From: Neoechinorhynchus agilis
Taxonomy: Eukaryota > Animalia > Acanthocephala
Assembly (NCBI GenBank): GCA_051530055.1
Contig: CM121342.1
Span: 3,719,489 to 3,783,488 of the forward strand
Direction: 5' to 3'
DNA: 64,000 bases
Shown: in pieces, positions 12,126 through 62,273 of the stretch
Numbering within the stretch: the stretch's first letter is position 1
How the letters are laid out: the number at the start of each line of letters is the position of its first letter
The notes under the pieces: model-generated
What the model was told of the DNA's origin: nothing
Databases searched by the model: none
Seen by the model: only the letters and a program-made list of their open reading frames with translations
Translations under genes and position numbers: made by a program

Positions 12126-13296
12126 TCATAAATAGGATTCTCGATGAGCAGTCCTTCTTTCCTTAATTTCGTTCGCCGTCTGAACAGGAATATTGCCTTG
12201 GAAAAATATTGGAAACACTTCTGAAATATTAATTTCCCGGTCGACATGAACGTGTCTTTGTGCCCTTTCCAAAGATCCAATCATTGATAGCATAGAAAAC
12301 GATATCCTGTAAGCATCGATTAGACAGACATCATCGATCGTTGCAACTTCGATATCTTCTCCAGTTGAATCTTTGATAGCTAATCGTTCGGTTTCCTGCA
12401 TAAGAAGGAAGTTTATCTCCTTTGGTGTTCGACTTCTCATTCTCGGACCAAGCAGAGCAGCGAATGGTGATTTCGACGGTTTCTTCATCGATACCATCGA
12501 CAGAACTTCTAATATCGATTTGTTTCTCGCTTTGTAATCGGACAAGAGACCAGCAATATTCTCACCGACGTATTTCAAAGCCTTAACGGGATCGTGATTC
12601 TCAGTCATCATATCTAACAATTCTTGAATGCAAAGAAAACATTTGACTTGATCGTTCCGTTCCACGAGATTGTCCCATCTCTCATTTATCAACTTTCTGG
12701 CTTCGTCGCATCGTTTTTCCTCTATTAATTTCATTACTTCTCCTCGTTTCTTAACAAAGTCCAGCGCTAAAGTTGGATCTTTGAAATTTAACTGAGGAAA
12801 ATCCGAGTAGGACAAATGCTTGGCTTCTTTAAAGATGGCTTCCAATGGTTCATGAAAACCTCTAACGATCATATAATTAACCGACATAATGTCCGCGGAA
12901 TTATGAGTTCTCCATTTCTCCATTATCATTTTAACATAGTCCTTGTAAAATGACTGTAATTTGCAATGAAAGAGATTCGAATACATTTCGTAAGATTCGG
13001 ATTTTCGATACTCAATGAACTCAATTGCACATCGTCTTATACTCAAGAAGGTGAAAAATAAAAGGTTTGTTTCTTTGTAAACATTTACATGTCCAAATTT
13101 AGTAAGCATTGGTAAATTCCGTCTTAAATATTCGTGATTTCTATCATCGCCCTTCGAAGACAAATCTTTACTTGGTCTTCAATAAATCAGTCACTAAGCC
13201 GTCACCAAGAATATGAAATCGGCACTTGATTGCAAATAAATTGATTATTGATCTTATTTTTTCCGATGCAAGGCAATGACAAGATAAAATTTGCAT
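12126..13296 (-). CDS. GID8-like: GID8/TWA1-like LisH-CTLH-CRA protein, copy 1
   Basis: LisH: IMSVNYMIVRGFHEPLEAIFKEA. CTLH: KRGEVMKLIEEKRCDEARKLINERWDNLVERN. CRA: ALKY..SPFAALLGPRMRSRT.KEIN. The 345-aa exon is 12126-13165; a putative ATG exon 13296-13206 is joined by a 40-nt GTGACT..AAAG intron. Confidence 0.8.
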
Positions 13297-13799
13297 TTAA
13301 ATCGTATAATCGATTAATTCGGATTTGAGATATCTTTGGAATTTAGGTAAGAATGTGTTCTTTTTTCATTTATGTTTTGCATTTTGTTCGAATTTGCATT
13401 TTGAGCGTCCTAAATTTCAAAGCCACGAGCGCCGATTGCACTTTGGGTGCTTCAAAAAATCTACCTCCGATAAAATTAAAATTTAATGATCTACCTCCAA
13501 GAATCGCGTTATGCAGTACGCAATCCAATCTTCCACATTATCTTCAAAGAACTTTCTTGCTGTTTCCAAATCACAATCGAATCCGTTTTCTAGGAAATAA
13601 ATTTGCGGACGCTTAAGCGTCCTTAAAGTCTAAAAGATAAATAGGCCGCGTGGATCTTTCTAAAACGACGAAATATTTCCAGGCGATCTTAATTATATCG
13701 GCCGATGGGCCAACAAAAGTTGTTTGCCCGAGATTCATAACTATCGAGATTATCCGGAAATTCCAACGGCTAATTTGTTGATTCAAGGATCTCATTCAT

Positions 13800-14020
13800 C
13801 GAAGGAGAGAGACGTAGAAGCGACATCGACGTTTCAGGGGAAGAAGTTTTAGTGTAGCGAAGGAAAGATACGTTAGAAGGAAGGATTCCGTTTTCTGGGT
13901 ACAAAGCTTACTAGAAATTTTTCTTCGGAAACAGTAAGTATCGACGAACGGTCGAAGCCCAATGACGATCGATGCTGCTTTTTGGTGGCTCAGAGGGCGT
14001 TTAAAAACAAAAGACAAATT
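13800..14020. repeat. Dispersed ~220-bp module A (nine copies in the window)
   Basis: agagacgtagaagc.acatcgacgtttc...gacgaacggtcgaagcccaatgacgatcgatgct occurs near 5686, 9300, 13800, 19577, 23125, 31690, 42380, 60230 and 62775. Confidence 0.9.
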
Positions 14021-14318
14021 TTTTCATTTGAGCAATGAAATTAAATCCTAGGGATTCGGGCGGAAAACGCGTTTTGTTCATAGGATTTAAAAAGTTTTCG
14101 GAATCAACTTGACAAGTTGAAAAAACGCTTCTTTTGCCGTGATCGTTAACTCGATCCACATTTACAATTTTAAGCAGTGAAGTGAGACGAAGTGGAGTTT
14201 AACAAGGGTCCCAAGAAAGTTTGATAATTTAGTAGAAAACAATCCGAACGAAGAAAACGATGCTGGTAAAAATCGATCAAAAATTATGATACTTCAAGGG
14301 CCACGAATAGATAATAAC

Positions 14319-16010
14319 AGCACGTTTATTGGTAATAAATACAGAATATAAACTATCGATGAAAATACAGAATATTATCCATGTAACTTTGGGTCCTCAG
14401 AAGCATTCCAGTTCAGAGTTATTCAAAAAAGCGTATTCGTTAGGGTGAGAATATCAGGTCGGAGGGATGCCCATTTGGATGAGAATATGTCTGCTCGTTT
14501 AAGAATATCCGGTTGGAAGGTCCGTTCTTGTGGGCGAATTGGTGGTTATTGTTTGGAGGAGCGTTTTTTAAGGTTGGTCTTTCCTCAGGTTCATTTTCGG
14601 GTTATGATATTCGAGAGAAGATTGGGCAGCATGGAAAAAGAGCGTTGGTATAGGGAGGTTCGAGGTTGAGGGCGGATGAAAGAAATTGTGAAGGCGATTT
14701 GATTGTTTTATGAAAATGGCATCAAGGCATTCGGAGAGAGGGGGAAAGTCAGTTTTGCCAATTTTAGATGATCTTTTATGAAACATTTCAAGACGACGGA
14801 TTTGAGATTTGGATGGATTGCAAAAGACGGAATAACCTTAGGTGATGGAGGGTAGAATTAAGCTGAAGCAAAAGTTGTAGAGATCGAGCGAATGGATTCC
14901 TAAATGTCGGAGGCGTTTGAGGAGATAAATTTTAAAGGTATTGTGCTTGAGGGAAACAGTGATGTGCTAGTCCCATTTCAAATTGGGAGACCCAGAATTC
15001 TTAGGGGATTGCTCGTAGGATGTCATTTAGAAGCTCGAGGGAGGATGTTGGGTTGAGGGAGAATGAAGTGATCATTTCGAAGCATTTAGAGAAATTCAGG
15101 TGGAGTTTGTGATTGGTGCAGAAATCTTTTACGTGTGTTATTTCGTTAGAGTTAAAAAAAGGGAGAGGTGGGCTGGTGAATGGGTAATGAGGATGAGATC
15201 ATCGGCATAGAAGAAGAGTTTGGAGTGAGAAGAGACAGGTTTGAGGTCGTTTAGAACAATATTAAAGAGAAGTGGTGACAGCATAGCACCTTGAGGTACG
15301 ACTTTGGTGAAGGATAGGCTGATCGAGGAGGTAGAACGGCAGTGAATGTATTGTTTGCGATTGTAAAGATAAGATTCGAGCCAGCGAATCTTCCACAAGT
15401 TAAGACCAAAATCGGAGAAGGCACGGAGAAGAAGTGAATGGTCCACGGAGTCGAAGGCTTTCGATAAATCCAGTTGAATGAGACGGGTGACATGGGGGGA
15501 TTATTGTCGAGGTTTCGTGGGAGCGTGTCATAAATGATAAGTACGGCGTTGGTTGCAGAAAATTTGGGTCGGAAGCGCCATTGTAAGAGCGATAACTTTT
15601 CGTTGAGAAGTGGAAGAAGGCGAGATTTAAAGCATTTTTCGATGATTTTTTAAATAAGGGGTAGAATGGATATTGGACACAATGATTCTGCTGAAATAGG
15701 ATGTTCTTTTTTGGAACAAGGATGACTTCAGCAGTTTTTAAGCATGAGGGGATTAAGAGGTTCTATGAGTTCGAGGATGATGCAGTGAAAAGCCCAGTTT
15801 GGGATTTCGGATTGACAGGACGAATTTTGAGGTACTTTTTTTGAGATGTGAAACTAACGGGTGTACCGACGGGTTGAAAAAAGTTTCTGGAGTATGCGTG
15901 AAAGATTGTGGTTTCTGGCGTGCAGCAGTGATTGTAATTTGAGCCAGGGCAGAGGTTCTGATTGATGGAGTCTAGAACTTGTTTTAATTCAGTGGAGGTC
16001 AAATTAGGGA
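14319..16010 (-). mobile_element. Degenerate LINE (CR1/L2/jockey-type) RT and 3' end, copy 1
   Basis: QLDLSKAFDSVDH (read in copy 2), PQGAMLSPLLFNI and YADD motifs, with frameshifts. The 3' end carries aataaa and joins gataataac, which continues uninterrupted at 63215. Confidence 0.85.
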
Positions 16011-17500: not shown

Positions 17501-17931
17501 AGTCATCTGCTGACCGCAAGCTATAATTCTGGGTTTAGATACCTTGTGATGACACTATTTAGATATTTTGCGATATCATGGGTGATTGTACCACAAAGAC
17601 TGACTACTGGTCTCAATTTTGGCCGATCCATATTCTCGTGGATTTAACGATATAAGCATCGGACTTGCTTTCGTTTTGTCGATCCACTGTCTTCACATAG
17701 ATGTCCAGTATTCTCTGCAGGACTCTGCGGTCCTTCATTTTGTTCAATGGGTGATCTGCTTCATAGTAAAATGGAATTAATGTTACCCCGAAGATGGTTT
17801 TGGTTAAAATCCGAAATATTGGAGCATTAAAAGATTTAGCAGTGTGCATATTCTATTCAAGAATAGTGCTGAGAAAAATTACTGAGAAGGGTAAAGATAT
17901 ATCTAAAATAGGATTCTCGATGAGCAGTCCT

Positions 17932-19067
17932 TCATTCCTTAATTTCGTTCGCCGTCCAAACAGGAATATTGCCTTGGAAAAATATTGGCAACACTTCATA
18001 AATATTAATTTCCCGGTCGACATGAACGTGTCTTTGTGCAATTTCCAAAGATCCAATCATTGATAGCATAGAAAACGATATCCTGTAAGCATCGATTAGA
18101 CAGACATCATCGATCGTTGCAACCTCGATATCTTCTCCAGTTGAATCTTTGATAGCTAATCGTTCGGTTTCCTGCATAAGAAGGAAGTTTATCTCCTTTG
18201 GTGTTCGACTTCTCATTCTCGGACCAAGCAGAGCAGCGAATGGTGATTTCGACGGTTTCTTCATCGATAACATCGACAGAACTTCTAATATCGATTTGTT
18301 TCTCGCTTCGTAATTGGACAAGAGACCAGCAATATTCTCACCGACGTATTTCAAAGCCTTAACGGGATATTCTTGAATGCAAAGAAAACATTTGACTTGA
18401 TCGTTCCGTTCCACGAGATTGTCCCATCTCTCATTTATCAACTTTCTGGCTTCGTCGCATCGTTTTTCCTCTATTAATTTCATTACTTCTCCTCGTTTCT
18501 TAACAAAGTCCAGCGCTAAAGTTGGATCTTTGAAATTTAACTGAGGAAAATCCGAGTAGGACAAATGCTTGGCTTCTTTAAAGATGGCTTCCAATGGTTC
18601 ATGAAAACCTCTAACGATCATATAATTAACCGACATAATGTCCGCGGAATTATGAGTTCTCCAGTCCTCCATTTCTCCATTATCATTTTAACGTAGTCCT
18701 TGTAAAATGACTGCAATTTGCAATGAAAGAGATTCGAATACATTTCGTAAGATTCGGATTTCCCAAAATCAATGAACTCAATTTCACTTCGTCTTATACT
18801 CAAGAAGGTGAAAAATAAAAGGTTGGTTTCTTTGTAAACATTTACATGTCCAAATTTAGTAAGCATTGGTAAATTCCGTCTTAAATATTCGTGATTTCGA
18901 TCATCGCCCTCCAAAGACAAATCTTTACTTGGTCTTCAATAAATCAATCACTAAGCCTTTTTGATCTAACAGTCACCAAGAATATGAAATCGGCACTTGA
19001 TTCCAAATAAATTGATTGTTGATCTTATTTTTTCCGATGCAAGGCAATGACAAGATGAAGTTTGCAT
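17932..19067 (-). pseudogene. GID8-like: GID8-like copy 2, disrupted
   Basis: A short insertion near 18665 breaks the frame. QELLDMMTENHDPVK is reduced to QEYPVK, there is an early TGA after NEIKE, and the 3' flank differs. Confidence 0.8.
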
Positions 19068-21029
19068 TTAAATCGTATAATCGATTAATTCGGATTATAG
19101 ATATCTTTGGAATTTAGATCAGAATGCGTTCTTTTTTAATTTATGTTTTGCATTTTGTTCGAATTTGCATTTTGAGCGTCCTAAATTTCGAAGCAACGAG
19201 CGCCGATTGTACTTTGGGTGCTTCAAAAAATCTACCTCCGATAAAATTAAAATTTAATGATCTACCTCCAAGAATCGCGTTATGCAGTACGCAATCCAAT
19301 CTTCCACATTTTCTTCAAAGAACTTTCTTGCTGTTTCCAAATCACAATCGAATCCGTTTTCTAGGAAATAAATTGGCGGACGCTTAAGTGCCCTTAAAGT
19401 CTAAAAGATAAATAGGCCGCGTGGATCTTTCTAAAACGACGAAATATTCCCAGGCGATCTTAATTATACCGGCCGATGGGCCAACAAAAGTTGTTTGCCC
19501 GAGATTCATAACTATCGAGATTATCCGGAAATTCCAACGGCTAATTTATTGATTCAAGGAACTCATTCATCGAAGGAGAGAGACGAAGAAGCGACATCGA
19601 CGTTTCAGAATAAGAAGTTTTTGTTCAGGGAATGAAAGAGACGTTAAAAGGAAGGAACCCGTTTTCTGGGTACAAAGCTTTCTCGAACTTTCCTCCGAAA
19701 ACAGTAAGTATCGACGAACGGTCGAAGCCCAATGACGATCGATGCTGCTTTTTGGTGGCTCAGAGGGCGTTTAAAATAAAAGATAAAATACAGAAAAAAG
19801 AGATTTTGGAGTGAATGGTGCTCGGATTTTGCGAGACTCGGCGAGTGTTAATTTTTAAAAGAACGAAGATAATTGTTAAAAAAATACGACTAACATCATT
19901 TCTAAATACCGTGCAGCGGGGGAACACCACGAGCATCCGTATGGCGGCCGTAGCGGATTTTCAGGAACCAAGGGAAAAAATATAAAATTTACTTAATTTT
20001 AATAAATTTAAGTTTTGGGAAAAATCAATATCTCATAAATCCTTTTCTTTAACAAATTTACCATTATTAACTGAACGAGGGCAAGAGGAGAAAATATGCA
20101 AAAAATTTATTAATTCTAAATCAAAAGAAGATTATTGATGAACCTTTCAATATGTAAAGCCCCATTATAAAAAATTATGACAAAAATTTAAAAGCTCGTA
20201 AAATAAATAAAAGGATTAGAATTCACCGAGATATGTTGATTTGTTAAAAAAATTAAAAAAGATAATTTTTAAACACGAATCACATGGGTCAAACGACAAT
20301 TCGAAATTTACATTGACACGTTTACATCAGGAAATCCCAAAATTATACAAAAAAAAGCGCACTTCGAAAAAATGCGAAAATAAGTTGGTATATAAAAAAA
20401 ATTGACCACTTGACGTAAGATGTTAAAATGGTAATGCCATGTATTAAGAAAAATAGTTTTTATTGGTTTCGTGGATATTTATATACTGCCACAATTTCAT
20501 TCATAATTTTGCAGCATTTTGCAAAATCAAATGGATTAGAGTACTTCAACAACGGCATTTTATATGCTTACCAGAATAGAGTTCAATTGAATTTATAGCA
20601 AATAAAGTCATTCTACTTTTACGCTACATTGTCCAAACAATAAAAACAAAGATTAATTAGGTTTCTCTTTAAAAATCTCGGTATAAATTCGTTATGGGTT
20701 TCGATTTTAACGACTGAATTAATAAAAACAATTGGAAAAAACGCAAATATTTTTTGTCATTGGCAATGATCAAAGAACGAACGTTATTCGCCGATTCGAT
20801 TGATGGATAATTAGTGCACCCTTATAGAAAATAAATGACTTGACTGTTAATCTGCAATCAAAACGTGCCGACTGTTTTAGCGAATCAGCTTATTGTTGGA
20901 AAAGGCAACAGAACACTAAATTGTTGTATTTGAAGCATTATCTTTGGTTGCACCTAACATCGTTTTTTTACATACTGCAATATCAAACTAAAACCAAACA
21001 AGGCAAAATGGGGACTTTAAAAGATTTTT

Positions 21030-22300
21030 TGAACGTTTGGACCGTCGCAAACAAGAATCTGCCAAAGATGAAGAGTTTAAAATGCTGCTGTCGCCACAAA
21101 GTGGTGGAACATTTCACGAATTATGGAACGAACCAACGGAGCAAAAAAGATTTCAATATGCACAAGATGATAATTAAAATTTGTTCATCTGTGGCGATTC
21201 AGAAACTCATACTTTTCAAAATGGTACTGGAGAAGCATTTAAAGAGGACTTTGATGAATATTTAATTCCTGAACATTGTCCTTCATCTGAACAAAAACCT
21301 CCATGGATGTTATAAAAAGATTATTCAATCGAGAAACTGCAAGAAGACGATTTGGATGAACATGTAGATCAAGACCAGTATATTGAAAGTGAACCTTCGG
21401 ATTCAATAGTCGATGCTCCTCAATCAGAAGAAGAAAAAAACCGTCGATATTGGAGGTAGAACCTTTTAACTTAAGGAAATGCTCGGAAAAACCTTAATGA
21501 ACAATGTCGATAAACTCGACTGGAGAAAACGACGAATTATAGTTAATGAAATCAACGATAATCTGGCCTTTAGAATCAAAGAAGATAAAAGCGACAGTAA
21601 CAAATTGATCATAAATTACAATGTAATCGAAGTTTGAAATCCACGTTCAATTAACAGAATAAGAGACCTTGTCGAATCCGTATTTCCTGCGAAAACCCGT
21701 AAGTGCCGTCTTTTGCAATCAACTACAAGAATCCTACAAATACGAAAATGGAAATCCTCCAAAGTTTAAATATTGTGGTTTCCTCTCGTGTGTAATTTAC
21801 TCACAGAAAGATGAATTATGGCACCGCGCTATTATTGGCGCCGTCATTCCACATTCAGATACAGTGCCGGCATTTTTAGTGAACGAAGGTCGTACTGAAA
21901 TCGTCCCACTGTCAAGTATTCAACCGCTAAAAAATGAATTCTGTCAAATTCCAAGATTCGCATCAAAGGGCAATCATCCGGGTATCAAACCGGTTCCAAA
22001 TGAAAATAAAGAAGAGAAATGGTCCATAGATGTAGTGTACAATTTTCAATTAGAAGCAAACAACAGAACGCTTCTTGGCTCATTTTTAAAGGTTAATGAA
22101 ATGGAAGGTTGTTTTGAAGTAACCTTAAAAGACTTAGAGATTCAAGAATATGTTGGTAACAATCTCCTTAAATCGAATCTCATGAAAGCAACCAATGAGT
22201 AACTTTCATGTTTTATTCCACCGGAGCTTCAAATGGACATAAGGAAGGAACCGTCTTGCGGAACAATAATACAAAGAAATGATTTCATGCGGCGATAATG
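21030..22300 (+). pseudogene. Extended Tudor-domain gene remnant, copy 2
   Basis: Near-identical to 7140-8410, with one extra CAA>TAA stop at 22200-22202. Confidence 0.65.
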
Positions 22301-23611
22301 AGCAGGACATCTGAGTTTTCCCTTCCATTTCCGATCAATACTACGATTATGTTGTTCGGCGTGAAATGATCGATGAGTTGCGATCCCTGCACCGAATGTA
22401 TTAAATCCTACGTAAGGCAAACAAATAATTTGGCAAAAATAACCAAAGAACACAAATATTCGCTCTGAGGAGAGGTATCATTGCCAGTTCCCCGTGACTC
22501 GGAGGCCAAATTTATTCGCTAGCTTGAAACAGTGGACTAGGGAATAAGGCGAACTTCAAACTGAATTTAAGAGCCGTGTAGATTCTGGACTTTAATAAAG
22601 GCACAAGATTGTGCCGGCGCCATAAATAAGCATTAAATTTTACATTGAACGCTTTGTATTTGTCAATAATTGAGATATTTTTTACACTTGCGGTTAAGCT
22701 TAGTTATTATCGCTTTCATGATCTGTTCGTCGATCATTCATTTCTCAAGCCAAGTTATATAAATTGTAAAGTGAGAAAACCAAGAATGGTTCTTTATCAA
22801 AATCAAATGCATGAAAAGTTACAATTGCCTCAGTAAGCGAAAAGGAGAGCTCGAAGAATAAACACGATTGCCGATTCGTTAAGTATCGACAATCAGAGTA
22901 AAGAATATTTTATTATCAACTCCAATATTGCACATTTAATTCAAAGAATTTTTTTCTCGACAATAAATTGGCCGACGCTTAAGCGTCCCTAAATTCAAAA
23001 ACATAAAAAGGCCGCGTGGATCTTTCTGAAACAACGAAATGTTTCTTGGTGAACTGAATTGTATCGACCGATGGGTCAATAAAAGTTTTTTGGCGAGGTT
23101 CAAATTTAGGAGATTATTCGGCTTCATCGAAGGAGAGAGACGTAGAAGCCACATCGACGTTTCAGGAGAAGAAGTTTTAGTGTAGCGAAGGAAAGAGACG
23201 TTAAAAGGAAGGAACCCGTTTTCGGAGTACAAAGCTTTCTCGAATTTTTCTTCGAAAACAGTAAGTATCGACGAACGGTCGAAGCCCAATGACGATCGAT
23301 GCTGCTTTTTGGTGGCTTAGAGGGCGTTTGAAAATAAAAGATAAAATGCAGAGCTCTTTTCTTTGCGAGACTCGACGAGCGTTAATTTTTAAATATAACG
23401 AAGATAATTGTTAAAAAAATACATTTATAACGTCGTAAACACTTGTAAACAAAAAATTACAAGCAAGGCGAGCTGCAGCTTTAGGAGCCGTTGAAGTGAC
23501 GAAAAAGGAAGCGAAAAAGAAACCTCGAACTTGAATATTAAAAACTTACAAGCAAAAACAATTATTTCCTTATGAAAGCAGATAATTTCGTTTTATTGGG
23601 CGTATGATTTG

Positions 23612-25510
23612 CTATTCGGACCACTCAAATACCGAGGAAACGCCCAACGCTAAAGGGAAACCAGGCCTAAATTTTGTTCATCAAATCACTACTTTGAGAC
23701 AAGCAATTTCATTTGCACGGCAAAAACACGATCCTTATCCGATGCCACGACCTGTTGACGCTGCAATGATACAATTTGACGCAACAAGCCACGACAGCCC
23801 AATTACGTATTCGGACCACTCAAATACCGAGGAAACACATAACGCTAAAGGGAAACCAGGCCTAAATTCTGTTCATCAAATCACTACTTTGAGACAAGCA
23901 ATTTCATTTGCACGGCAAACACACGATCCTTATCCGATGCTACGACCTGGCTGACGCTGCGATGATACAATCGGCGCAAATAACAAGCCACGACAGCTCA
24001 ACTACGTATTCGGACCACTCAAATACCGAGGAAACACCCAACGCTAAAGGGAAACCAGACCTAAATTCTGTTCATCAAATCACTACTTTGAGACAAGCAA
24101 TTTCATTTGCACGGCAAGCACACGATCCTTATCCGATGCCACGACCTGTTGACGCTGCAATGATACAATTTGACGCAACAAGCCACGACAGCCCAATTAC
24201 GTATTCGGACCACTCAAATACCGAGGAAACACCCAACGCTAAAGGGAAACCAGGCCTAAATTCTGTTCATCAAATCACTACTTTGAGACAAGCAATTTCA
24301 TTTGCACGGCAAACAAACGATCCTTATCCGATGCCACGACCAGTTGACGCTGCAATGATACAATTTGACGCAACAAGCCACGACAGCCCAACTACGTATT
24401 CGGACCACTCAAATCCCGAGGAAGCACCCAACGCTAAAGGGAAACCAGGCCTAAATTCTGTTCATCAAATCACTACTTTGAGACAAGCAATTTCATTTGC
24501 ACGGCAAACACACGATCCTTATCCGATGCCACGACCTGTTGACGCTGCAATGATACAATTTGACGCAACAAGCCACGACAGCCCAATTACGTATTCGGAC
24601 CACTCAAATACCGAGGAAACACCCAACGCTAAAGGGAAACCAGGCCTAAATTCTGTTCATCAAATCACTACTTTGAGACAAGCAATTTCATTTGCACGGC
24701 AAACACACGATCCTTATCCGATGCCACGACCTGCTGACGCTGCAATGATACAATTTGACGCAACAAGCCACGACAGCCCAATTACGTATTCGGACCACTC
24801 AAATACCGAGGAAACACCCAACGCTAAAGGGAAACCAGGCCTAAATTCTGTTCATCAAATCACTACTTTGAGACAAGCAATTGCATTTGCACGGCAAACA
24901 CACGATCCTTATCCGATGCCACGACCCGTTGACGCTGCAATGATACAATATGACGCAACAAGCCACGACAGCCCAATTACGTATTCGGACCACTCAGATA
25001 ACGAGGAACGCCCAACGCTAAAGATACCGCCTAAATTCTGTTCATCAAATCATTACTTTGAGACAAGCAATTTTATTTGCACGGCAAACACGCGATCCCT
25101 ATCCGATGCCACGACCTGTTGACGCTGCAATGATACAATTTGACGCAACAAGCCACGACAGCCCAACTACGTATTCGGACCACTCAAATACCGAGGAAAC
25201 GCCCAACGCTAAAGGGAAACCAGGCCTAAATTCTGTTCATCAAATCACTACTTGGAGACAAGCAATTTCATTTGTACGTCAAACACACGATCCTTATCCG
25301 ATGCCACGACCTGTTGACGCTGCAATGATACAATTTGACGCAACACAATTTGACGCAACAAGCCCCGACAGCCCAACTACGTATTCGGACCACTCGAATA
25401 CCGAGGAAACGCCCAACGCTAAAGGGAAACCAGACCTAAATTCTTTTCATCAAATCACTACTTTGAGACAAGCAATTTCATTTGATCGGCAAACACACGA
25501 TCCTTATCCT
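23612..25510 (+). repeat. 195-bp tandem array 2 (~9.7 units)
   Basis: Same unit and same left junction (gggcgtatgatttgc|tattcggacc) as array 1. Gives a 404-aa repeat ORF at 23908-25122. Confidence 0.95.
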
Positions 25511-27000: not shown

Positions 27001-28100
27001 ACGCTGCAATGATACAATTTGACGCAACAAGCCACGACAGCCCAATTACGTATTCGGACCACTCAAATACCGAGGAAACACCCAACGCTAAAGGGAAACC
27101 AGGCCTAAATTCTGTTCATCAAATCACTACTTTGAGACAAGCAATTTCATTTGCACGGCAAACACACGATCCTTATCCGATGCCACGACCTGTTGACGCT
27201 GCAATGATACAATTTGACGCAACAAGCCACGACAGCCCAACCACGACAGCCCAACTACGTATTCGGACCACTCAAATACCGAGGAAACGCCCAACGCTAA
27301 AGGGAAACCAGGCCTAAATTCTGTTCATCAAATCACTACTTTGAGACAAGCAATTTCATTTGCACGGCAAACACACGATCCTTATCCGATGCCACGACCT
27401 GTTGACGCTGCAATGATACAATTTGACGCAACAAGCCACGACAGCCCAATTACGTATTCGGACCACTCAAATACCGAGGAAACACCCAACGCTAAAGGGA
27501 AACCAGGCCTAAATTCTGTTCATCAAATCACTACTTTGAGACAAGCAATTTCATTTGCACGGCAAACACACGATCCTTATCCGATGCCACGACCTGTTGA
27601 CGCTGCAATGATACAATTTGACGCAACAAGCCACGACAGCCCAACTACGTATTCGGACCACTCAATACCGAGGAAACACCCAACGCTAAAGGGAAACCAG
27701 GCCTAAATTCTGTTCATCAAATCACTACTTTGAGACAAGCAATTTCATTTGCACGGCAAACACACGATCCTTATCCGATGCCACGACCTGTTGACGCTGC
27801 AATGATACAATTTGACGCAACAAGCCACGACAGCCCAACTACGTATTCGGACCACTCAAATACCGAGGAAACGCCCAACGCTAAAGGGAAACCAGGCCTA
27901 AATTCTGTTCATCAAATCACTACTTTGAGACAAGCAATTTCATTTGCACGGCAAACACACGATCCTTATCCGATGCCACGACCTGTTGACGCTGCAATGA
28001 TACAATTTGACGCAACAAGCCACGACAGCCCAACTACGTATTCGGACCACTCAAATACCGAGGAAACGCCCAACGCTAAAGGGAAACCAGGGAAACCAGG
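27001..28100 (+). repeat. 195-bp tandem array 3 (~5.6 units)
   Basis: Same unit; ends by running into CRE-like fragment 2. Confidence 0.95.
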
Positions 28101-29170
28101 CCATCCTCCAAAGTTTGTTTAACAAGACTCCTTTTCAATCACGAAATTGGGGAAATTGGGGGGGGGGGTTGCGCATAAAATGGGCTCGTCAAATCACGTC
28201 GTGGGGAACTGGTCAAATCCCGCAATCGCTTCAACCGGCAACACCAGAAAATCCGTCGACGCCCCCCGGTGACGCCGGCAGTCTTCCTTCCGCTGCTGAT
28301 CTCGTGCGTGTTAGGAAAATTCGGAGTCCTCTTGGACACGACTCTTTTCTTTCCCCAGACTTGTACTTTCCTCTGGCGACAGTTCGGAAGAGTCCCTCAC
28401 TGCGGTAATCAAAAGACGCCTCGTATCCTTTGAGGAAAGTTTCTTGAGCATTCGTCGTTTAGCAAAGAGGATTCCCAACAACGTGCGAATGAGACTAACT
28501 GCCATCGAACACTACTAGACCGCTTGCTGGGCGCGTATCTTCAAAACTCGCTGATGAGATGTTCTGGGAGCTGTCCATATTTTGTTCTCCTCTGATACAT
28601 TTGCAAGTGATTCGCCCTCCACACATTCAGGGTTTAAAGTTGAAGCATCCGCAAAGTTCAACCCAAAGTGAAACTTCTACATGTTCCGTCCCTCAAACAC
28701 TCCACTTCGACAGTTGAACTGAGAATGGCCATATCCTCCTTCGCCAATTGTTCTGGCCATAGTCTCGATGGGTTTGGTCCTCAGCATCTTAAAGGATATG
28801 ATGTCGCTCTCAGTTGGAGATGCAGGCCACTCCCTCGCTACCGATCTTCGACCTTTTTTCATCGAAGAAAATTTACATCCGCGGGCAATGTAGTTATTTT
28901 TTGGCGCATCTTTTTGTGCTTTGAACAAAATTACGGGTGGGATTCGTCCCATCGCCGTTGGCTCTGCTCTACGTCGGCTCGCTAGTAAAATCCTTTGCAA
29001 GCGTATTGCAGAAGGGATAAGGGCAGCAACTTTGCCCAGTCCAACTGGGATGCTGCACACCCTGCGGGTCCGAAGCCATTGTCCACGAACTCCGCCAGTT
29101 TATCGCCAATAGTTCAACGCCGTGTGTGATTTTCAAGTGCGACTTTACAAATGCCTTCAATTCCATTCAA
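28101..29170 (+). mobile_element. Degenerate 5' half of CRE-like retrotransposon, copy 2
   Basis: Near-identical to 10816-11870, including the truncation point. Confidence 0.85.
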
Positions 29171-33874: not shown

Positions 33875-34170
33875 ATGAAAGCTTCTTTAAGAACCGCAGA
33901 TACAATCTTCGCTCTCGCTTCTGGCCCATTACCAAGCGCCATTGCAGTTGTCCGTGTATCCGGTCCAGATTCCCTCAACATTTTTAAGCAAATAGCCGGT
34001 TCGTTACCAAGATCACCACGTTTGATGTCCTACAGAAATTTCGTGGATCCACAATCACATGAACTAATCGATAAAGGATTATCGGTCTACTTCAAATGTG
34101 AGTATCGATAATAAAGTGTAAAAAATCGACTAGAAACATTGGAAGCTCCCAATAGCTACACCGGAGAAGT
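33875..34170 (+). pseudogene. GTPBP3: N-terminal fragment of an MnmE/GTPBP3 tRNA-modification GTPase
   Basis: DTIFALASG..SAIAVVRVSGP..LIDKGLSVYFK, then a GTGAGT intron, then PNSYTGE. No further homology is seen before the converging PPAN 3' end. Confidence 0.75.
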
Positions 34171-44520: not shown

Positions 44521-45741
44521 TTGCATTTTGAGCGTCCTTTGGGTGCTTCAAAAAATCCACCGTTAATGATGAAATAAATCCTTCGATCATTTCAATCACC
44601 TCCGATAGAATTAATTTTTAATGAACTTCCTCTAGGAATCGCTTTATCCAATACACATTCCAATATTGAACATGTTCTTCAAAGAACTTTCTTGCTGTTT
44701 CCAAATCACTATGGAATCCGTTTTCTCAGCAGAGACGTTTGTGATGATATATTAGTTGATGATCGTCGATTAATCCGTGTGAATGATTACTAATAAAAAT
44801 TAATCGGTTACTGTTTAAGTTTAAAATATCGTAGATGAATTAAACCAAGGCATATTTCAATTCGTTCAATTTAAACGTTTTGTCTAAAAATTCCGAGAAA
44901 ACATAAAATGTGAAAAATGGTGAAAAATTGTTTGCTTTTGAGTGAAATGCTGCAATCCGCCTCGAGTGCTTCGTTTCTTCATAAAAAGACAAGAACATAA
45001 ATGCGAAAAAGCGTAGCAACTAAAATTCAAGGGTGTTCTGAAATTTTGGTATTCTTGAGTTTTTTGCGTTTCACAGACGATGCGAGATGTGTTTCAGTGT
45101 CACGACTCATGACTTGAAGTCACATGAAAAGTAAATGAACTTTCGTCTTTTTTCTTCGTTTATTGAATAGTTGCTGAAATTTTAAACGTCTTATAGAAGT
45201 CCTAAACGTAGTCCTAAACGTGAAATCACATTTAAAGTTTGATGACTCTTACGGTACACACGAGGCATCTTTTAGTTATAACGCAAAATAGAGGTTGATG
45301 ATTCTACTTGTGAACCCAATTGGTTTTCCGATTTATAAATCTCAAGTTCTTAAAAGTCCCCTTATTTATAAGACTATTTTTCTGGATAACAAACTTGATA
45401 AGTTCACGATTGAATTTAAACAAATTTCCGATAACGTGCAACGCTTTTGATTTTAAACATATATCAAAAACTCACTGCACTTCTGATTGTCGATCATTCA
45501 AGTCACTTCAGATGAAGAAATATTCGTTGAAACTGTAATCAAAAAGGGTATTTCTTGTGACAAAGTCGTAAAATTATGATGGTATTCATCACGAAAGCCG
45601 TGAAGTTTTTTAAATTCGCCATGAGAAAAAATCTATAAATCGTAAACACTTTGGGCTCGAATTGCAACATCAACGAGCCACACTCTGGACGCCGCCCCTT
45701 TTTACGATTTGAAGCGTTTATTGCGGCCTAGTAAAAACATT

Positions 45742-48700
45742 TCACTTCGATAGCCAGGGATTACTACGAAGCGCTTCTCGATTTCTATCACCGTAATCGT
45801 ATAAAAGTTCGTCATTGCTCTTGATTTCTCGTTTAGCGAACAATAAAAGACATAAACGTTCCCTGATTTCCACCGCCCTTAACTCAAGATTGCATTTCGT
45901 CTTACTATGATTGACCAATCTGCCTAGCCTTCCAGATTCAATCGTTGAATCGAGACTAAAAAATCGAAGTAACGCCATTTTTAGCTTGAAAAAATTAACT
46001 CACCAGTAGGATTTCGATTCGTATTTAAAAAACGTCAAGAAACATCCTATTGTTGAATCCTGATCATAGATCTTCTCTCGCCGCTCGCCTTCTTCACGAC
46101 TGATGAGTTCTCCAGTTAATTCAAGCACAAAGTCATTTCGTTGAAATTGTCGCTTTGCAAACACTGAACGGCCTTTATTTCTGCAATGCCGAACATCGAA
46201 CTCATCTTCACAGGCTTTCTCGATCTTGACTTCCAATTCAGACTTTTCAATAGCCTTTGGTAGCATAAAAATCTTTTATATGGTGAAGGCTTTTGTGCGA
46301 CAGTAAACATTTAGTTTTTAAAAAAGGTTTCTTTTTTTTACAAAAATAGTTAGTATCATATATTTTTCTATTAACTGTATGATTCAAAAAAGGAAAGCTC
46401 TATCCTTTCGGAACTTTAAAAAATTCACGCAATGAAATAATGAATTAATTGTATGATTAGAAGCGTATTATTTAAATAATTTTTTTAAGACGTTCTGTGA
46501 ACCTCGCTGGCTTCCATGATCAAATTTTTCGCCAATAGGTTCAAAATGTCTTTGATAAAGAACTCTCGAAGACCTAAATAATACGCTTCTAATAAATTAA
46601 TATATTTTGTTTGGTGATATAAAGATTAATTTATTAATTCCTTTCTTCAATATTTCGTCCGTCTCGTCGATAAAAAAACTGATAGGCAACTTGAAGAAGT
46701 CCGACGATAGGAATGAAATATTGTGAACAGGATTCCATAAATCAATCTTTATATCACCAAACGAAAGTTATTGATTTATTAGAAGCGTATTATTTAGGTC
46801 TTCACCCGATAAATAATTTTTTTAAAGACGTTTTGTGAGCCTCGCTGGCTTCCATGATCAATTCGCTTCGCCAATACGTTCAAAATGTCTTTGATAAAAA
46901 ACTCTCGAAGACCTAAATAATACGCTTCTAATAAATTAATATATTTTGTTTGGTGATATAAAGATTAATTTATTAATTCCTTTCTTCAATATTTCGTCCG
47001 TCTCGTCGATAAAAAAACTGATAGGCAACTTGAAGAAGTCCGACGATAGGAATGAAATATTGTGAACAGGATTTCATAAATCAATCTTTATATCACCAAA
47101 CGAAAGTTATTGATTTATTAGAAGCGTATTATTTAGGTCTTCACCCGATAAATAATTTTTTTAAAGACGTTTTGTGAGCCTCGCTGGCTTCCATGATAAA
47201 ATTAATATATTTTGTTTGGTGATATAAAGATTAATTTATTAATTCCTTTCTTCAATATTTCGTCCGTCTCGTCGATAAAAAAACTGATAGGCAACTTGAA
47301 GAAGTCCGACGATAGGAATGAAATATTGTGAACAGGATTTCATAAATCAATCTTTATATCACCAAACGAAAGTTATTGATTTATTAGAAGCGTATTATTT
47401 AGGTCTTCACCCGATAAATAATTTTTTTAAAGACGTTTTGTGAGCCTCGCTGGCTTCCATGATCATTCGCTTCGCCAATACGTTCAAAATGTCTTTAATA
47501 AAAAATTCTCGAGGACCTAAATAATACGCTTCTAATAAATTAATATATTTTGTTTGGTGATATAAAGATTAATTTATTAATTCCTTTCTTCAATATTTCG
47601 TCCGTCTCGTCGATAAAAAAACTGATAGGCAACTTGAAGAAGTCCGACGATAGGAATGAAATATTGTGAGCAGGATTTCATAAATCAATCTTTATATCAC
47701 CAAACGAAAGTTATTGATTTATTAGAAGCGTATTATTTAGGTCTTCACCCGATAAATAATTTTTTTAAAGACGTTTTGTGAGCCTCGCTGGCTTCCATGA
47801 TCAATTCACTTCGCCAATAGGTTCAAAATGTCTTTGATAAAAAATTCTTGAAGACCTAAATAATACGCTTCTAATAAATTAATATATTTTGTTTGGTGAT
47901 ATAAAGATTAATTTATTAATTCCTTTCTTCAGTATTTCGTCCGTCTCGTCGATAAAAAAACTGATAGGCAACTTGAAGAAGTCCGACGATAGGAATGAAA
48001 TATTGTGAGCAGGATTTCATAAATCAATCTTTATATCACCAAACAAAATTTATCCATGAACAACTTCTTTATAATAAATTAATTTGTTGAAAATAGAATT
48101 TTCGCGGAAATTTTTTAAATTTTGACAAGACTCAAAGTCGAGATTTTATGGATGTTAAGCCGACATTTAATATTAAATTTATCTATTGATTTTTACGAAA
48201 TAGCCATTAGAATTTTTTGGAAGCTCTTTACCCATTGCTTAAAGATTGATTTGAAATAGTAGCAATCTTTAGACAAAACGTAAAATTGATGTTTATTATT
48301 TTCTAACGATCCTAACGATTACAAGTTTAGATGCATCGCACAAAACCTAAATACTTTTTTATAGCGAATTATCAAATAATTGATTTATTAGATAATTTTC
48401 GGCCTTCGCGTAAGCCTTCTTCAGTCTAATTGTTAAAGTGTTTTACTCACATTATCAAATAAATGATTTAATTATTATAGTTCGCTTTAAAAAAAGTAAA
48501 TAATGAACATCTTTACGAATCCTAAATGGTTTTTTGGGAAGAAGGCGAACAATAGCAAAAAAGGAAATTCTAAAAACAATTTAATAAAAAAAAGATGGAT
48601 TGTTGTTAAAGGTACCTTTAGAACGGAGGTAGGTAAACGTCGAGAACGTCGAATATTACTAGCCGACGAACTCTTATCCTTCTTTCTAAACTTTTTTTTG

Positions 48701-56075: not shown

Positions 56076-59048
56076 TTGCCGAAATTCAAATTACATCACA
56101 ATGTGTTCAAATCGCCTACAATCGACGCTGGTGACGCAGATAATTTGAACGCGCCACTTATCGATCATAATCAACCTGAGAAGACCAACGCTGCCGGGCT
56201 CCCTTGCGTCTCTACTGGTTTGTGTCCGTTTTGCGGTAGGTCTTTTAAATTAACCAATTTCGGGGTTTTGTTTGTCCATGGTCCCCGGGATCTCCGCTGT
56301 AGTGGGTCTGGTTCTCCACCACAATTAACCGAAACTTTCGTGCCTGAGACCCCTCAGATCACCACTGATTCTATTTCGATACCTGACATCGTGCGGTTTC
56401 TGCCCAGGAACGTCCTGAAACGGATCCCTAAAGGCGCGCGATATCTGATCGCCAAAGCATTTACGGGATTCCTCAACGAATGCCTTCAAAGGAACCACGT
56501 CTCTTCGCTTTCCCGCGCTTAGTCCTCTGCACCAGCGGTGATTTTGAAGTGTCTTTGATATCAACAATCAAGGAAAGGTTAGCCTCCTTTGAACAAATAT
56601 TTAAGGATTTTGAAAGGAATCTCTGCGAGGTTCGTAAGGGACGCACGAAGGAAGAGTTTCGCTGCCGTTTTTCAAAACGATCACTGACTGAGCGTGTCTC
56701 TTCGAAGCTTGCAGACGGGGATGTTCGGGGGGCTGTTCGGTTATTGTCATCCTCCGACAGTTTCGCAAAAGGAGACAGCGAGACGCTACAAATACTCCGG
56801 TCGAAGCACCCATGTAGTAGCGGAAGTTTTGAAATTCCATCTCCTCCCATACAAGACAGGACGCCCACTCAAATTTCAGAGTTACAAAAGGCCTTCTCAT
56901 CTTTTGCAAATGGTTCGGGTCACAGGCTTGACGGACTAAGGCCTCAGCACCTAAAGGACTTTACAACTGGTGAAGCAGCTTTCTCCTTAGAAAAGTCGCT
57001 TTCTCGAACAGTCGACCGCCTGACTGGAGTGGACCTGAACCCCGTTGCAAAGGACCTATTTTTCGGAGCACCATTAAGTGCCCTCACAAAAAAAGAAGGT
57101 AGGATCCGTCCCATCGCCATATCTTCGACGATACGCCGACTCGCAGGAAAAATTCTCTGCAAACGTATCATAGAGAAAACCGGACAACAACTTCGTCCAG
57201 TCCAACTGGGCTGCTGCACATCCTGCGGGGCGGAAGCTATTGTCCACTCGCTCCGAAACTTTGCTACGAGAAGCTCAGAGCCGTGCGTGATTCTTTAGTG
57301 TGATTTTCGGAACGCCTTTAACTCTCTCAATGGAGAAATCATGTTCCGCGCAATTAGGGATCATGCCCCAGAAGCCTTCCAGTATTTTCTCAATGCCTAC
57401 GGGACGGCGACTCCTTTGCTTTTCGAAGACCACCTCATTTGGTCCGAAAGAGGAGTGCAGCAAGGAGATCCCCTCGTTCCAATCGCATTCTCCCTAACAG
57501 TAAATCCAATAGCGCATTCTCTCCATTCCAGCTTCAACGCTTGGTACTTGGATGACTCTACGCTCGGAGGTGATCCCTCCGTTGTACTGCGCGATTTGGA
57601 GAATTGAGCTTAATGCTGAAAAATGTGAGCTCCTTGTACGGAATATTGGAGACGCCGCCAAAGTCAAAGAACTAATGGCTGGGTTCGAGGCCGTAGCTCC
57701 AGGCCTGAAACTCGTGACTCGGGAACAACTCAGCCTCCTGGGCAGTTGCGTCTTCGATTCAAATGTGGAAGATGAGATCGGCCATATCATACCGAAACTT
57801 TCGTTGCTGTGCGATAGGGTGAGCGCTCTCTGGACTCATGGAGCGTTATTTCTGATAAAGAATGCGCTCTTCATCCCCAAATTATTGTACAAGGTTCGCA
57901 CAGTAACAGTTTTCAAACACAAAAAAGGATTGGCAAAGCTGGACGATAAGGTGAGGGCATGCCTCGAGCGTATTTTAAATGTCCAGCTCTCAGATGAGGC
58001 GTGGCGACAAGCTTCTTTGCCTGTGTCATCTGGGGGATTGGGAATTCGGGCACTAGTCGACCTTGCTTTGCCGGCCTTTCTTGGATCGTTTGAGGGGAGC
58101 CTACCAGTCTCGAAGAACATTTTGAAGGAAAAGTTCTGTCTTGACCGGGATTTCGTGGTGGCGGTTGAGGAATGGTGCCAGCAGACAGGCGCTAACCATG
58201 TTCCCGTGAATGGCCTCAGACAGTCGATCTGGGACGGACCTCTTGTCGCGAGAGCTCACAGCTCTCTACTTTCAGGTTCTCGCGATGGGGTCGTCCGAGC
58301 TAGACTGTTGGCAGTTTCAACACGAGAATCTGGGGCGTGGTTGGAGGCTGTTCCTCTGGCATCAGTGGGAACTCTTCTTACTGATGAGGTAACGAGGATC
58401 GCAGTATCCTTAAGACTCGGTCTCCCGATATGCACGCCCCATCGCTGTCGATGTGGGTCTTTGGTTGATGCTTTCGGGCGACACGGTCTCGTCTGCAGAA
58501 GGTCAGCAGGAAGGTTTTCACGCCATTCTGAAATCAATAACGCAATTTCTCGAGCGTTGAGAACGGCGAACTTCCCGAACATCCTGGAACCCGCCCACCT
58601 CTGTAGACTAGACGGCCGTAGGCCCGATGGAATTTCGGTCTTCCCGTGGCGGGAGGGCAAATGCCTTCTCTGGGACGTCACGTGTGTGGATACCCTCGCA
58701 GCCAGCAACATCCCCTACTCCCTCGAAATCGCCGGTGGTGCCGCCAGTGCAGCGGAAGGGAAGAAAATACGGAAATATCTTCACTTATCGAGGGCTCACT
58801 ATTTTGTCCCCTTTGGGGTAGAGACGTATGGAGCGCACGGCAGCTCGGCACTCACTCTGGATCTCTCGAAGAAATTGAGAAAGGCAACCGGAGACTCAGG
58901 AGCAGGCGTATTCCTTCGACAAAATATCTCGCTAGCAGTACAACGAGCGACGGTCGAGGAAGGACAAAAGCTGGAATTTGGCGGGAGGTGGTGAGTGTGC
59001 TTCAAACAGATTGTTAAAAATATATTATGTTTATTTAAAAAAAATCTC
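56076..59048 (+). mobile_element. Near full-length RLE-type non-LTR retrotransposon (CRE-like), inactivated
   Basis: N-terminal CPFC..HGPR..C finger. RT motifs RPIAI..RRLAGK, DFRNAFN, GVQQGDPL and YLDD. C-terminal CRC..H..C knuckle and RLE (RHSEIN, RPDG, WDVTC, PFGVETYG), then an A-rich tail. It has frameshifts and a TAG at 57296-57298. Confidence 0.9.
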
Positions 59049-61088
59049 GGTATAAATTCGTTATGGGTTTCGATTTTAACGACTGAATTAATAAAAACAA
59101 TTGGAAAAAACGCAAATATTTTTTGTCATTGGCAATGATCAAAGAACAAACGTTATTCGCCGATTCGATTGATGGATAATTAGTGCACCCTTATAGAAAA
59201 TAAATGACTTGACTGTTAATCTGCAATCAAAACGTGCCGACTGTTTTAGCGAATCAGCTTATTGTTGGAAAAGGCAACAGAACACTAAATTGTGTTAAAA
59301 ATATATTATGTTTTTAAAAAAAATCTCGTAACATTTATGATTTGAAGATTAATCGATGGAAAATCCAAAAAATTGGACGTGACCGCGCGATTAATTTCGT
59401 CACCAAAAATCGGTCTGCCAGATCAGAAACACCGAACTTTGCTGACGTCAGTCATTCCTATTTTGTTGTTCTTTATAATTCGTACAACTCCGAGCTGTAA
59501 CACTGAATTTATTGAACATTCGCAAGAGAAGATTATCAATATGTTCATTAGTTTGAACTTTCTGATTTCCAATAACACCATCGTTGGTTCAACGCAAACC
59601 ACCGAAAATTTGTTCTCAGAAAATAAAGTCGAGTCGGTATTTCCTCGCTGAATTTCCAATGTTCTTTGAGAAGTTGAGTATTCAGTCAACTTTTCCTCCT
59701 TTCGTTGGACTCTAGGATATATTTTCTTTGTGTTTCGGAAAGACTCGGACGCAATTGACGTCCGATATGCACTTTCCTTTGATTTCGGCGTTCTCTCGAT
59801 ATTTTGTAAGGCTCTTCATATATTGTATTTTTTGTGACGAGAAAAATAGAGATCGATTTATTAATTCACAATACTCCGTCCGTTGCGTAAGACTCGGATT
59901 TTACAAAATTTGAAACTGACACTTAAATGCAAATAAATTGATTGTTGATCTTATTTTTTCCGATGCAAGGCAATGACAAGATGAAGTTTGCATTTAAATC
60001 GTATAATCGATTATTTCGGATTTGAGATATCTTTGGAATTTAAATCAGAATGCGTTCTTTTTTCATTTATATTTTGCCTTTTGTCCGAATTTGCATTTTG
60101 AGCGTCCTAAATTTCAAAGCAACGAGCGTCGATTGTACTTTGGGGCCTCAAAAAATCCATCGCGAATGATGAAATAAAACTTATTTGGTCGGGGACGGTG
60201 GATTCCTGGATTCCTGGATCTCGTTCATCGAAAGAGACGGAAGCCACATCGACGTTTCAGAATAAGAAGTTTTATTGCAGGGAAGGAAAGAGACGCTAAA
60301 AGGAAGGAACCCGTTTTCTAGGTACAAAGCTTTCTCGAACTTTCCTCCGAAAACAGTAAGTATCGACGAACGGTCGAAGCCCAATGACGATCGATGCTGC
60401 TTTTTTGTAGCTCAGAGGGCGTTTAAAAAATGAAAGATAAAATGCAGAAAAAAGAAATTTAGGAGTGAATGATGCTGTAATTTTGCGAGACTGCACGAAC
60501 GACATTTTATCCTAAATTTCAAAAAAACGATCATCGATGGCACTTTTTGTGCACCAAAAATCCATCGTTGATAATAAAAGAAATCATTCGGCTCACCGTT
60601 TAATAGATTTTAATTTTCGATTTTATCTTCTCATTTTAAGGGCATTTCGTCTGTTATTCGGCGAAGTGGAACACTCGGTTTTTTCTTGAAAATGCTCATT
60701 GGTCCACCTTTAATTTCATGGCTCTCTTCCGCTGTTTCTTTAGCTGGATAGCAAAATACAAATTATCCGTTGTCGGTGGTCCGAACGAAAACGTCTATCT
60801 TCCTGGCAGCCATCGTCCAGGCATCTGAAGGGTACCTTTTGAAAGATGTGATTTACAATGCTGAAAAATAAATCTAGAAAAAAATCACTTAAGCAATAAC
60901 CCATTACGAAGATTGTTTCCATATAATTCGTTCAATTTTTAAAAATAACGAAGATAATTATTAAAAAATACATTAATTCCATGTTCTGTCTCTCGATTTT
61001 TCACCTCAAAACATCTCGACCAAGAAGCAAAGCTCGGAATCTTTATTTGTTTCCAGAAAATCGAAATTCTAGAAAAAGGTCACCACTT

Positions 61089-62273
61089 TCATAAATAGGA
61101 TTCTCGATGAGCAGTCCTTCTTTCCTTAATTTCGTTCGCCGTCCGAACAGGAATATTGCCTTGGAAAAATATTGGAAACACTTCTGAAATATTAATTTCC
61201 CGGTCGACATGAACGTGTCTTTGTGCCCTTTCCAAAGATCCAATCATTGATAGCATAGAAAACGATATCCTGTAAGCATCGATTAGACAGACATCATCGA
61301 TCGTTGCAACTTCGATATCTTCTCCAGTTGAATCTTTGATAGCTAATCGTTCGGTTTCCTGCATAAGAAGGAAGTTTATCTCCTTTGGTGTTCGACTTCT
61401 CATTCTCGGACCAAGCAGAGCAGCGAATGGTGATTTCGACGGTTTCTTCATCGATACCATCGACAGAACTTCTAATATCGATTTGTTTCTCGCTTTGTAA
61501 TTGGACAAGAGACCAGCAATATTCTCACCGACGTATTTCAAAGCCTTAACGGGATCGTGATTCTCAGTCATCATATCTAACAATTCTTGAATGCAAAGAA
61601 AACATTTGACTTGATCGTTCCGTTCCACGAGATTGTCCCATCTCTCATTTATCAACTTTCTGGCTTCGTCGCATCGTTTTTCCTCTATTAATTTCATTAC
61701 TTCTCCTCGTTTCTTAACAAAGTCCAGCGCTAAAGTTGGATCTTTGAAATTTAACTGAGGAAAATCCGAGTAGGACAAATGCTTGGCTTCTTTAAAGATG
61801 GCTTCCAATGGTTCATGAAAACCTCTAACGATCATATAATTAACCGACATAATGTCCGCGGAATTATGAGTTCTCCATTTCTCCATTATCATTTTAACGT
61901 AGTCCTTGTAAAATGACTGCAATTTGCAATGAAAGAGATTCGAATACATTTCGTGAGATTCGGATTTTCGATACTCAATGAACTCAATTTCACATCGTCT
62001 TATACTCAAGAAGATGAAAAATAAAAGGTTTGTTTCTTTGTAAACATTTACATGTCCAAATTTAGTAAGCATAGGTAAATTCCGTCTTAAATATTCGTGA
62101 TTTCGATCATCGCCCTCCAAAGACAAATCTTTACTTGGTCTTCAATAAATCAGTCACTAAGCCTTTTTGATCTAACAGTCACCAAGAATATGAAATCGGC
62201 ACTTGATTCCAAATAAATTGATTGTTGATCTTATTTTTTCCGATGCAAGGCAATGACAAGATGAAGTTTGCAT
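61089..62273 (-). CDS. GID8-like: GID8/TWA1-like protein, copy 6
   Basis: Intact 345-aa exon, with ATG exon 62273-62183 and intron 62182-62129. The upstream flank lacks the LINE insertion seen in copies 1 and 3. Confidence 0.8.

Follow-up and report, generated by a model that had tools for sequence, protein, structure and literature searches.

Searching the 46.2-Mb genome assembly of the acanthocephalan Neoechinorhynchus agilis, we found that a 64,000-nucleotide stretch of contig C2 (C2:3719489-3783488, locus tags ACOME3_; hereafter the window) carries six copies of a gene for a GID8/TWA1-like protein, a divergent relative of the central scaffold subunit of the conserved GID/CTLH RING E3 ubiquitin ligase. 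They belong to an undescribed, lineage-restricted expansion of divergent GID8-like genes, although this kind of gene-family expansion is in itself ordinary. The best explanation of the observations as a whole, which we regard as probable, is that a GID8-derived family of N. agilis was duplicated at the DNA level, that its coding sequences (CDS) were homogenized, and that its product is a probable CTLH subunit, while the novel N-terminal extension proposed in an earlier reading of the same DNA (the original prediction) is a leader or an unconstrained tail. Read in this way, the genes clearly exemplify concerted evolution limited to a coding core, within the very small (46 Mb) genome of a fish parasite. 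Moreover, an animal with a dozen divergent GID8s and no conserved one would be a natural experiment in rewiring the ring assembly code of a complex in which a few residues in the CTLH-CRA domains determine ring partner pairing (PMC13061415).

A divergent GID8-like scaffold

Sequence profiles and predicted folds both indicate that the protein of the amplified branch of this family, subfamily A, is a GID8/TWA1-like LisH-CTLH-CRA scaffold colinear with GID8. Its sole Pfam match is to the CTLH/CRA model PF10607, which scores 30.7 bits for the full 345-residue open frame and 32.2 bits for a 286-residue form starting at Met60 (cut-off 26); its paralogs score 28.5-48 bits. Against solved structures, the single sequence matches human GID8 (E 7e-4), and a profile of the N. 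agilis family matches GID8 at E 7e-14 over residues 29-180, RanBP9/10 at about 2e-6, and MAEA at 6e-3. A first AlphaFold model, made for a 327-residue form with a 9-sequence alignment, led Foldseek to rank Twa1 first (E 1.6e-5). The second, made for the 286-residue form with a 46-sequence alignment, has a mean predicted local distance difference test score (pLDDT) of 80.7, exceeding 83 for residues 30-230, and VIA-align superposes it on the Twa1 CTLH-CRA fusion-construct chain 9soi_C with Z 15.3 and a root mean square deviation of 2.2 Å over 132 of 132 residues, on full-length yeast Gid8 with Z 14.4 over 204 residues, and on human GID8 with Z 11.1. The GID8/TWA1-like identity assigned by the original prediction is thus borne out by Pfam CTLH, the family profile against solved structures, both predicted folds, and the protein-database profile search described below, all of which agree.

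The Pfam LisH model finds no match in subfamily A and reaches merely 13 bits in subfamily D. The LisH region is supported by the family profile, whose alignment to GID8 includes LisH, and by a helix pair in the model, where the alignments with full-length Gid8 and RanBP10 start at residue 14-22. At the other end, where the C-terminal CRA helix of GID8 folds back on LisH, helices are predicted at 219-244 and the alignments to Gid8 and GID8 reach model residues 259-262, but pLDDT drops from 83 to about 50 past residue 230.

Compared with the known GID8/TWA1 scaffold (human/mouse 7NSC and 9SOC; yeast Gid8 6SWY), the worm protein has the same domain order and predicted fold; among all CTLH proteins, GID8/TWA1 is its best match in both sequence and structure, and both are small and without extra domains. 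However, identity is just 16-24%, a range that holds for the family against outside GID8s in general, and the worm protein is longer (286 residues versus about 228, with family members of 286-301 residues). Besides the silence of the Pfam LisH model, three additions set it apart: LisH and CTLH are separated by about 12 extra residues, an 'ETERLA' insert of about 26 residues precedes the last CRA helix, and the C terminus carries a tail. These additions are common to the worm family and missing from Seison and other GID8s in the 46-sequence alignment. Furthermore, the worm genes are multi-copy rather than single-copy, and most of the aligned Twa1 specificity positions differ.

One divergent family and no conserved GID8

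The GID8-derived family appears, from the databases searched, to be so far confined to N. agilis. A profile search covering 1.84 billion representative proteins gave four matches below E 1e-30, all from N. agilis, in agreement with the lineage specificity claimed by the original prediction. These were followed by 421 weaker matches, mostly of GID8 size, and those sampled were named as CTLH-domain proteins or 'Glucose-induced degradation protein 8'. A word-based protein search returned N. agilis proteins only. The best match outside N. agilis is a Seison nebaliae protein (KAI3381094.1, E 6e-15), which is a full-length, conventional GID8 that itself matches human GID8 at E 2e-25 among solved structures and, unlike the worm family, lacks the 'ETERLA' and post-LisH inserts. 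Since Seison is the sister group of acanthocephalans, this best outside match fits the expected phylogeny.

Within the N. agilis genome, all GID8 homologs form one divergent family of five subfamilies, with no conserved GID8 beside them. Searched with Seison GID8, the genome gave matches confined to the GID8-like family, in the order of a cluster at C1:13.47-13.54 Mb (E 6e-12), C2:4.644 Mb, C3:3.455 Mb, and the amplified copies (E 4e-6). A whole-genome Pfam CTLH search likewise yielded this family plus one RMND5-like gene and nothing more. Because the GID8 homologs that these searches match all belong to the family, we infer that the genome has no conserved GID8; none was found with Pfam CTLH, Pfam LisH, or the Seison protein. 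Setting the copies against the genome's own canonical GID8, as the original prediction had asked, is therefore impossible. A 244-residue gene at C3:6.185 Mb was considered as the canonical GID8 and rejected, being the most divergent member of the family and without similarity to Seison GID8.

Genome-wide, the family comprises at least 12 intact genes plus many relics. In a maximum-likelihood tree, subfamilies A to D form one clade (Shimodaira-Hasegawa-like approximate likelihood ratio test 95), in which A groups with B (91) and C with D (97) as sister branches, while the fifth member, at C3:6.185 Mb, and Seison GID8 adjoin this clade with weak support. Subfamily B, the branch closest to Seison GID8, is a local cluster at C1:13.46-13.54 Mb that consists of two intact 289-residue genes, a truncated gene of 245 residues, a partial one of 167 residues, and a fragment with stops. 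Its ratio of nonsynonymous to synonymous divergence (dN/dS) is 0.28 at dS 0.19, which shows that members of the family have evolved in the past as constrained protein-coding genes.

GID8/TWA1 is described as one of the most conserved GID/CTLH subunits, and most species have one coding sequence for it (PMC3797097). TWA1 is, however, duplicated in Xenopus laevis and some fish, and other CTLH subunits occur as the pairs RanBP9/RanBP10 and RMND5A/B (PMC3797097, PMC13061415). These cases resemble that of N. agilis in being duplications of ring subunits that could give alternative assemblies. However, they are two-copy and conserved, whereas the N. agilis genes fall into five or more subfamilies that have diverged deeply, local amplification has affected two of these, and a conserved copy is no longer present. 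The genome and transcriptome paper on N. agilis, with one supplement (PMC12690905), mentions no CTLH or GID8 gene, and literature searches turned up no account of GID8 expansions or of acanthocephalan CTLH.

Concerted evolution of the coding core

Open-reading-frame listing, repeat finding, and alignment place all six window copies, here numbered by position, on the minus strand. They share a segment of about 1.35 kb, which begins about 260 nt 5' of the open frame and ends at an AATAAA that lies 44 nt past the stop, and outside this core both flanks and breakpoints vary from copy to copy. The 345-codon open frame is unbroken in five of the six, and the intact frames differ pairwise by 0-7 residues. 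The six same-strand copies, the five intact frames, and the differing flanking mosaics that the original prediction described were thus all seen again.

Counting only DNA strictly shared by the copies, pairs diverge on average by 0.28% between Met60 and the stop, as against 2.6% over codons 1-59, 4.28% for the 5' core, and 2.55% for the 3' untranslated region. Copies 5 and 6 illustrate the pattern: all 858 of their CDS sites, from Met60 to the stop, are identical, as against 16 differences among 262 sites upstream. The CDS differs from the co-duplicated flank when all sites are counted (Fisher p = 1e-11), and synonymous sites alone carry fewer differences than the noncoding core (Fisher p = 2e-4). 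Because purifying selection on the protein alone would not homogenize synonymous sites, gene conversion or ectopic exchange centered on the CDS is the best explanation. The coding core, 286 residues from Met60 to the stop, thus appears to be homogenized by gene conversion or ectopic recombination, with purifying selection probably also at work. In such a process, conversion or ectopic recombination would keep the CDS uniform and selection would possibly retain converted intact copies, while the promoter-side and 3' flanks would drift.

Ampliconic arrays, such as the multi-copy gene families of sex chromosomes, are kept uniform by gene conversion. N. agilis shares with them the many near-identical coding copies in one region and a CDS that is more uniform than its flanks. 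However, the six window copies have the same orientation and do not lie in palindromes, copies of opposite orientation being found outside the window, and conversion in N. agilis seems limited to the CDS of about 0.9 kb.

For subfamily A itself, dN/dS comes to about 0.45, based on 12 variable codons (5 synonymous and 7 nonsynonymous, one of these nonsense), and is indistinguishable from 1 (p = 0.08). Selection within subfamily A is not demonstrable from this ratio, and the intactness of its copies is largely explained by recent homogenization or recency. The amplification might then have arisen neutrally, through the instability of a region rich in repeats, with recent, redundant, and decaying copies whose number has no selective value. 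Besides the dN/dS within subfamily A, such an account draws on the 4 of 11 A-type copies that are already defective, on degraded family relics at C2:12.3, 13.0, and 14.0 Mb and at C1:11.0-11.1 Mb, and on neighboring non-GID8 segments (Tudor, Brix/WD40, and GDSL) that were duplicated too. However, it does not sit well with a CDS that is about 10-15 times less diverged than its co-duplicated flanks, synonymous sites included, with the dN/dS of 0.28 in the sister subfamily B, or with the persistence of seven intact copies across differing contexts. We therefore regard a purely neutral amplification as unlikely.

All six window copies belong to subfamily A, and the intact ones are positioned as follows. 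Copy 1 has its shared core at 12079-13411, its open frame at 12126-13163, and its likely CDS, from Met60 to the stop, at 12126-12986. Copy 3 (core 29953-31299, open frame 30000-31037) has Met19 at 30983, Met60 at 30860, and AATAAA at 29953-29958. Copy 4 (core 40926-42259, open frame 40973-42010), whose homology stops immediately past AATAAAGA, forms a tandem pair with copy 5 (core 43192-44538, open frame 43239-44276), the two being 2266 bp apart. Copy 6 has its core at 61042-62388 and its open frame at 61089-62126. A 14-nt indel noted in the original prediction is real, the stretch being missing from copies 1 and 4. The broken copy 2 (core 17854-19182) has a 246-codon frame at 17932-18672. It has gained 8 bp at 18664-18671 and lost 27 bp after 18369, a premature TGA at 17932-17934 ends it nine codons before the normal stop, and its 3' flank is unrelated to those of the other copies from about 17906.

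Extent and origin of the amplification

The window holds only part of the subfamily A amplification, which corrects the six-copy description in the original prediction. The genome search found at least 10 subfamily A copies at C2:3.63-3.82 Mb (about 190 kb), in both orientations, confirming that the gene is amplified although GID8 is usually single-copy (PMC3797097). Further copies are a partial one at C2:4.005 Mb and a broken one at C1:6.64 Mb, which is 94% identical and has a TAG stop.

The copies would have originated by tandem and segmental duplication of DNA within a repeat-rich stretch of contig C2. Gene units include promoter-side DNA, have variable ends, and lack a poly(A) tail, and no inverted or direct terminal repeats bracketing them were found, which together point to DNA-level duplication. 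One duplication in the window pairs 42053-44727 with 59904-62569 and includes a solo piece of the upstream region (59904-60157, minus strand), a remnant of a copy-4-like unit that adjoins retroelement sequence. A larger duplicated block at 5612-15699, to which no strand is assigned, carries a Tudor-domain open frame, a 195-bp satellite, and copy 1, and it recurs piecewise with copy 3 at 19502-24646, 27051-29515, and 29762-33619 (95-97% identity).

The setting of the copies amid retroelement fragments and satellites, together with one copy that lies on another contig beside modules also found in the window, could suggest that a transposable element captured and spread the gene. However, the missing terminal repeats and poly(A) tail, the variable unit ends, and the copying of promoter-side DNA along with the gene all speak against capture, and the upstream region is not a high-copy repeat, its 619 nt being found essentially only beside gene copies. 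Transposon capture was therefore rejected as extremely improbable.

About 50 pooled worms supplied the DNA for the assembly itself, a hybrid MaSuRCA build that was then passed through purge_dups and scaffolded with Hi-C (PMC12690905). Some of the copy number could be inflated in such an assembly, for example where haplotypes of the pooled sample were joined in tandem, and certain blocks are just 2-5% different. However, distinct single genes (Brix, WD40, 6PGL, and NDC80-like) and satellites lie between the copies, which differ in their breakpoints and indels and occur in both orientations and also on a second contig. An assembly artefact thus seems very improbable even as a partial source of the copies, and DNA-level duplication is the origin that we favor.

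The N-terminal extension

The original prediction joined a 91-nt ATG exon upstream to the 345-codon frame and proposed a novel N-terminal extension of about 120 residues before LisH. This part of it finds no support here. Judged from sequence comparison, these residues appear to be two different things, about 30 residues homologous to the GID8 N terminus and about 90 without constraint.

In copy 3, the proposed exon lies at 31094-31184 and the proposed 54-nt intron at 31040-31093; in copy 6, the exon is at 62183-62273 (minus strand in both). As the original prediction stated, five of the six copies keep the exon open; in copy 4, which has an intact open frame, it is 92 nt long and frameshifted. 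The exon is unconstrained and among the most variable parts of the unit, with 15 of 91 sites segregating in eight full copies, nearly all of them changing an amino acid, and its proposed donor reads GG in the C1 copy. Codons 1-59 of the open frame (30861-31037 on the minus strand in copy 3) are absent from all paralogs and diverge like the noncoding flank rather than like the CDS after Met60. Among variable codons, nonsynonymous and synonymous changes are 4:0 in codons 19-59 and 0:3 in codons 60-129. Consistent with a start at Met60, all four alignable sister paralogs begin at this position, and the stretch of roughly 30 residues between Met60 and LisH can be aligned with the N terminus of ordinary GID8. 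The extra N-terminal residues have AlphaFold pLDDT below 30, which is weak evidence as the alignment has no homologs there, and neither the 91-nt exon nor codons 1-59, each searched separately, matched any Pfam family.

Deposited gene models of the near-identical A copies conflict as well, giving 378, 327 (Met19), 286 (Met60), 200, and 161 residues, and copies 5 and 6 seem to be annotated with different starts although they are identical from Met60. The annotation of the subfamily A gene models needs curation. We infer that the conserved protein is the 286-residue Met60 form, and the claimed extension is most likely an untranslated leader or a young, unconstrained tail. The proposed N-terminal domain probably does not belong to the conserved protein.

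The original prediction also offered a bolder model, in which a paralog with a new domain of about 120 residues acts as a dominant-negative or substrate-redirecting subunit, is perhaps germline-specific or selfish, and was amplified by conflict or dosage selection. The amplified, homogenized array does resemble ampliconic gene families, one deposited model has an extra exon (KAL7670513.1), and the residues aligned to Twa1 specificity positions are mostly altered. However, what speaks against this model is that the extension is unconstrained, frameshifted in one intact copy, not found in paralogs, and without a predicted fold or Pfam match, and germline expression and drive are conjecture here. 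We consider this model improbable, and dominant-negative, germline, or selfish roles are speculation.

Partners and possible function

In known complexes, Twa1/GID8 pairs through LisH-CRA-C with RanBP9/10 and through CTLH-CRA-N with MAEA or RMND5, and it anchors ARMC8-GID4 (PMC13061415). N. agilis has two RMND5-like CTLH-RING genes, at C1:10947149-10948540 and C1:12621841-12623133, which are 37% identical to each other. The most economical reading would be a remodeled CTLH ligase with several alternative scaffolds, and its RING pair may be remodeled too, since no MAEA-like gene was detected. The A protein would remain an assembly subunit of this remodeled ligase, pairing with the two RMND5-like RING proteins. 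Alternative assemblies would follow from the several subfamilies, and a higher dosage from the many A copies.

A more far-reaching possibility is that the acanthocephalan CTLH scaffold radiated into several specialized subunits without leaving a conserved GID8, with RMND5-like genes duplicated and alternative rings formed, and that the A branch, its copies homogenized by gene conversion, was driven by dosage or conflict, for example with germline- or sex-biased roles. We think this scenario doubtful.

Against the explanation preferred here, a GID8-derived family whose product is a probable CTLH subunit, several points have to be set beside the pooled assembly and the dN/dS within subfamily A described above. 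Pfam-level searches of the genome recovered neither MAEA nor GID4 nor any SPRY-CTLH protein of the RanBP9 type, although in a genome that evolves this fast such a result does not show absence; the CTLH complex may be reduced, or the partners may have diverged past recognition. The title of PDB 9SOI names a specificity-rewiring construct with 11 changed Twa1 residues; only 3 of these are identical in a low-scoring alignment to mouse/human GID8, which does not tell which partners the A protein would choose. The deposited model KAL7670513.1 (378 residues) includes the upstream exon, with a donor 6 nt further 3', and any transcription start, splice, or start codon assigned to subfamily A is putative.

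Candidates for RanBP9 among the SPRY matches in the genome were rejected, the two best being a ryanodine-receptor-like gene and DDX1, and the only Pfam LisH match is TBL1-like.

Genes and repeats between the copies

The DNA between the copies holds ordinary genes (Tudor, Brix, WD40, 6PGL, an NDC80-like coiled coil, and EF-hand) as well as retroelement fragments. The Tudor-domain open frame is found at 7781-8410 and again at 21669-22202, within a duplication that pairs 5612-10817 with 19502-24646 (96-97% identity). The Brix/WD40 segment of the window (34160-36561) has an inverted copy, 99.6% identical, about 87 kb away (C2:3823489-3825890), and the array region thus contains large inverted duplications of ordinary genes. 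A GDSL-lipase-like segment (3852-4632) is 99.9% identical to DNA beside another A copy about 80 kb away (C2:3.643 Mb).

The 195-bp satellite forms three blocks (9761-10845, 23591-25449, and 27029-28121), which lie 3' of copies 1 and 3 and contain long open frames. A second satellite, with a unit of about 339 bp, is at 46480-48061. Retroelement-like open frames of 272 and 480 residues, without a Pfam match, occupy 56480-58994 of the window and recur with 96-97% identity at C2:3803489-3813488.

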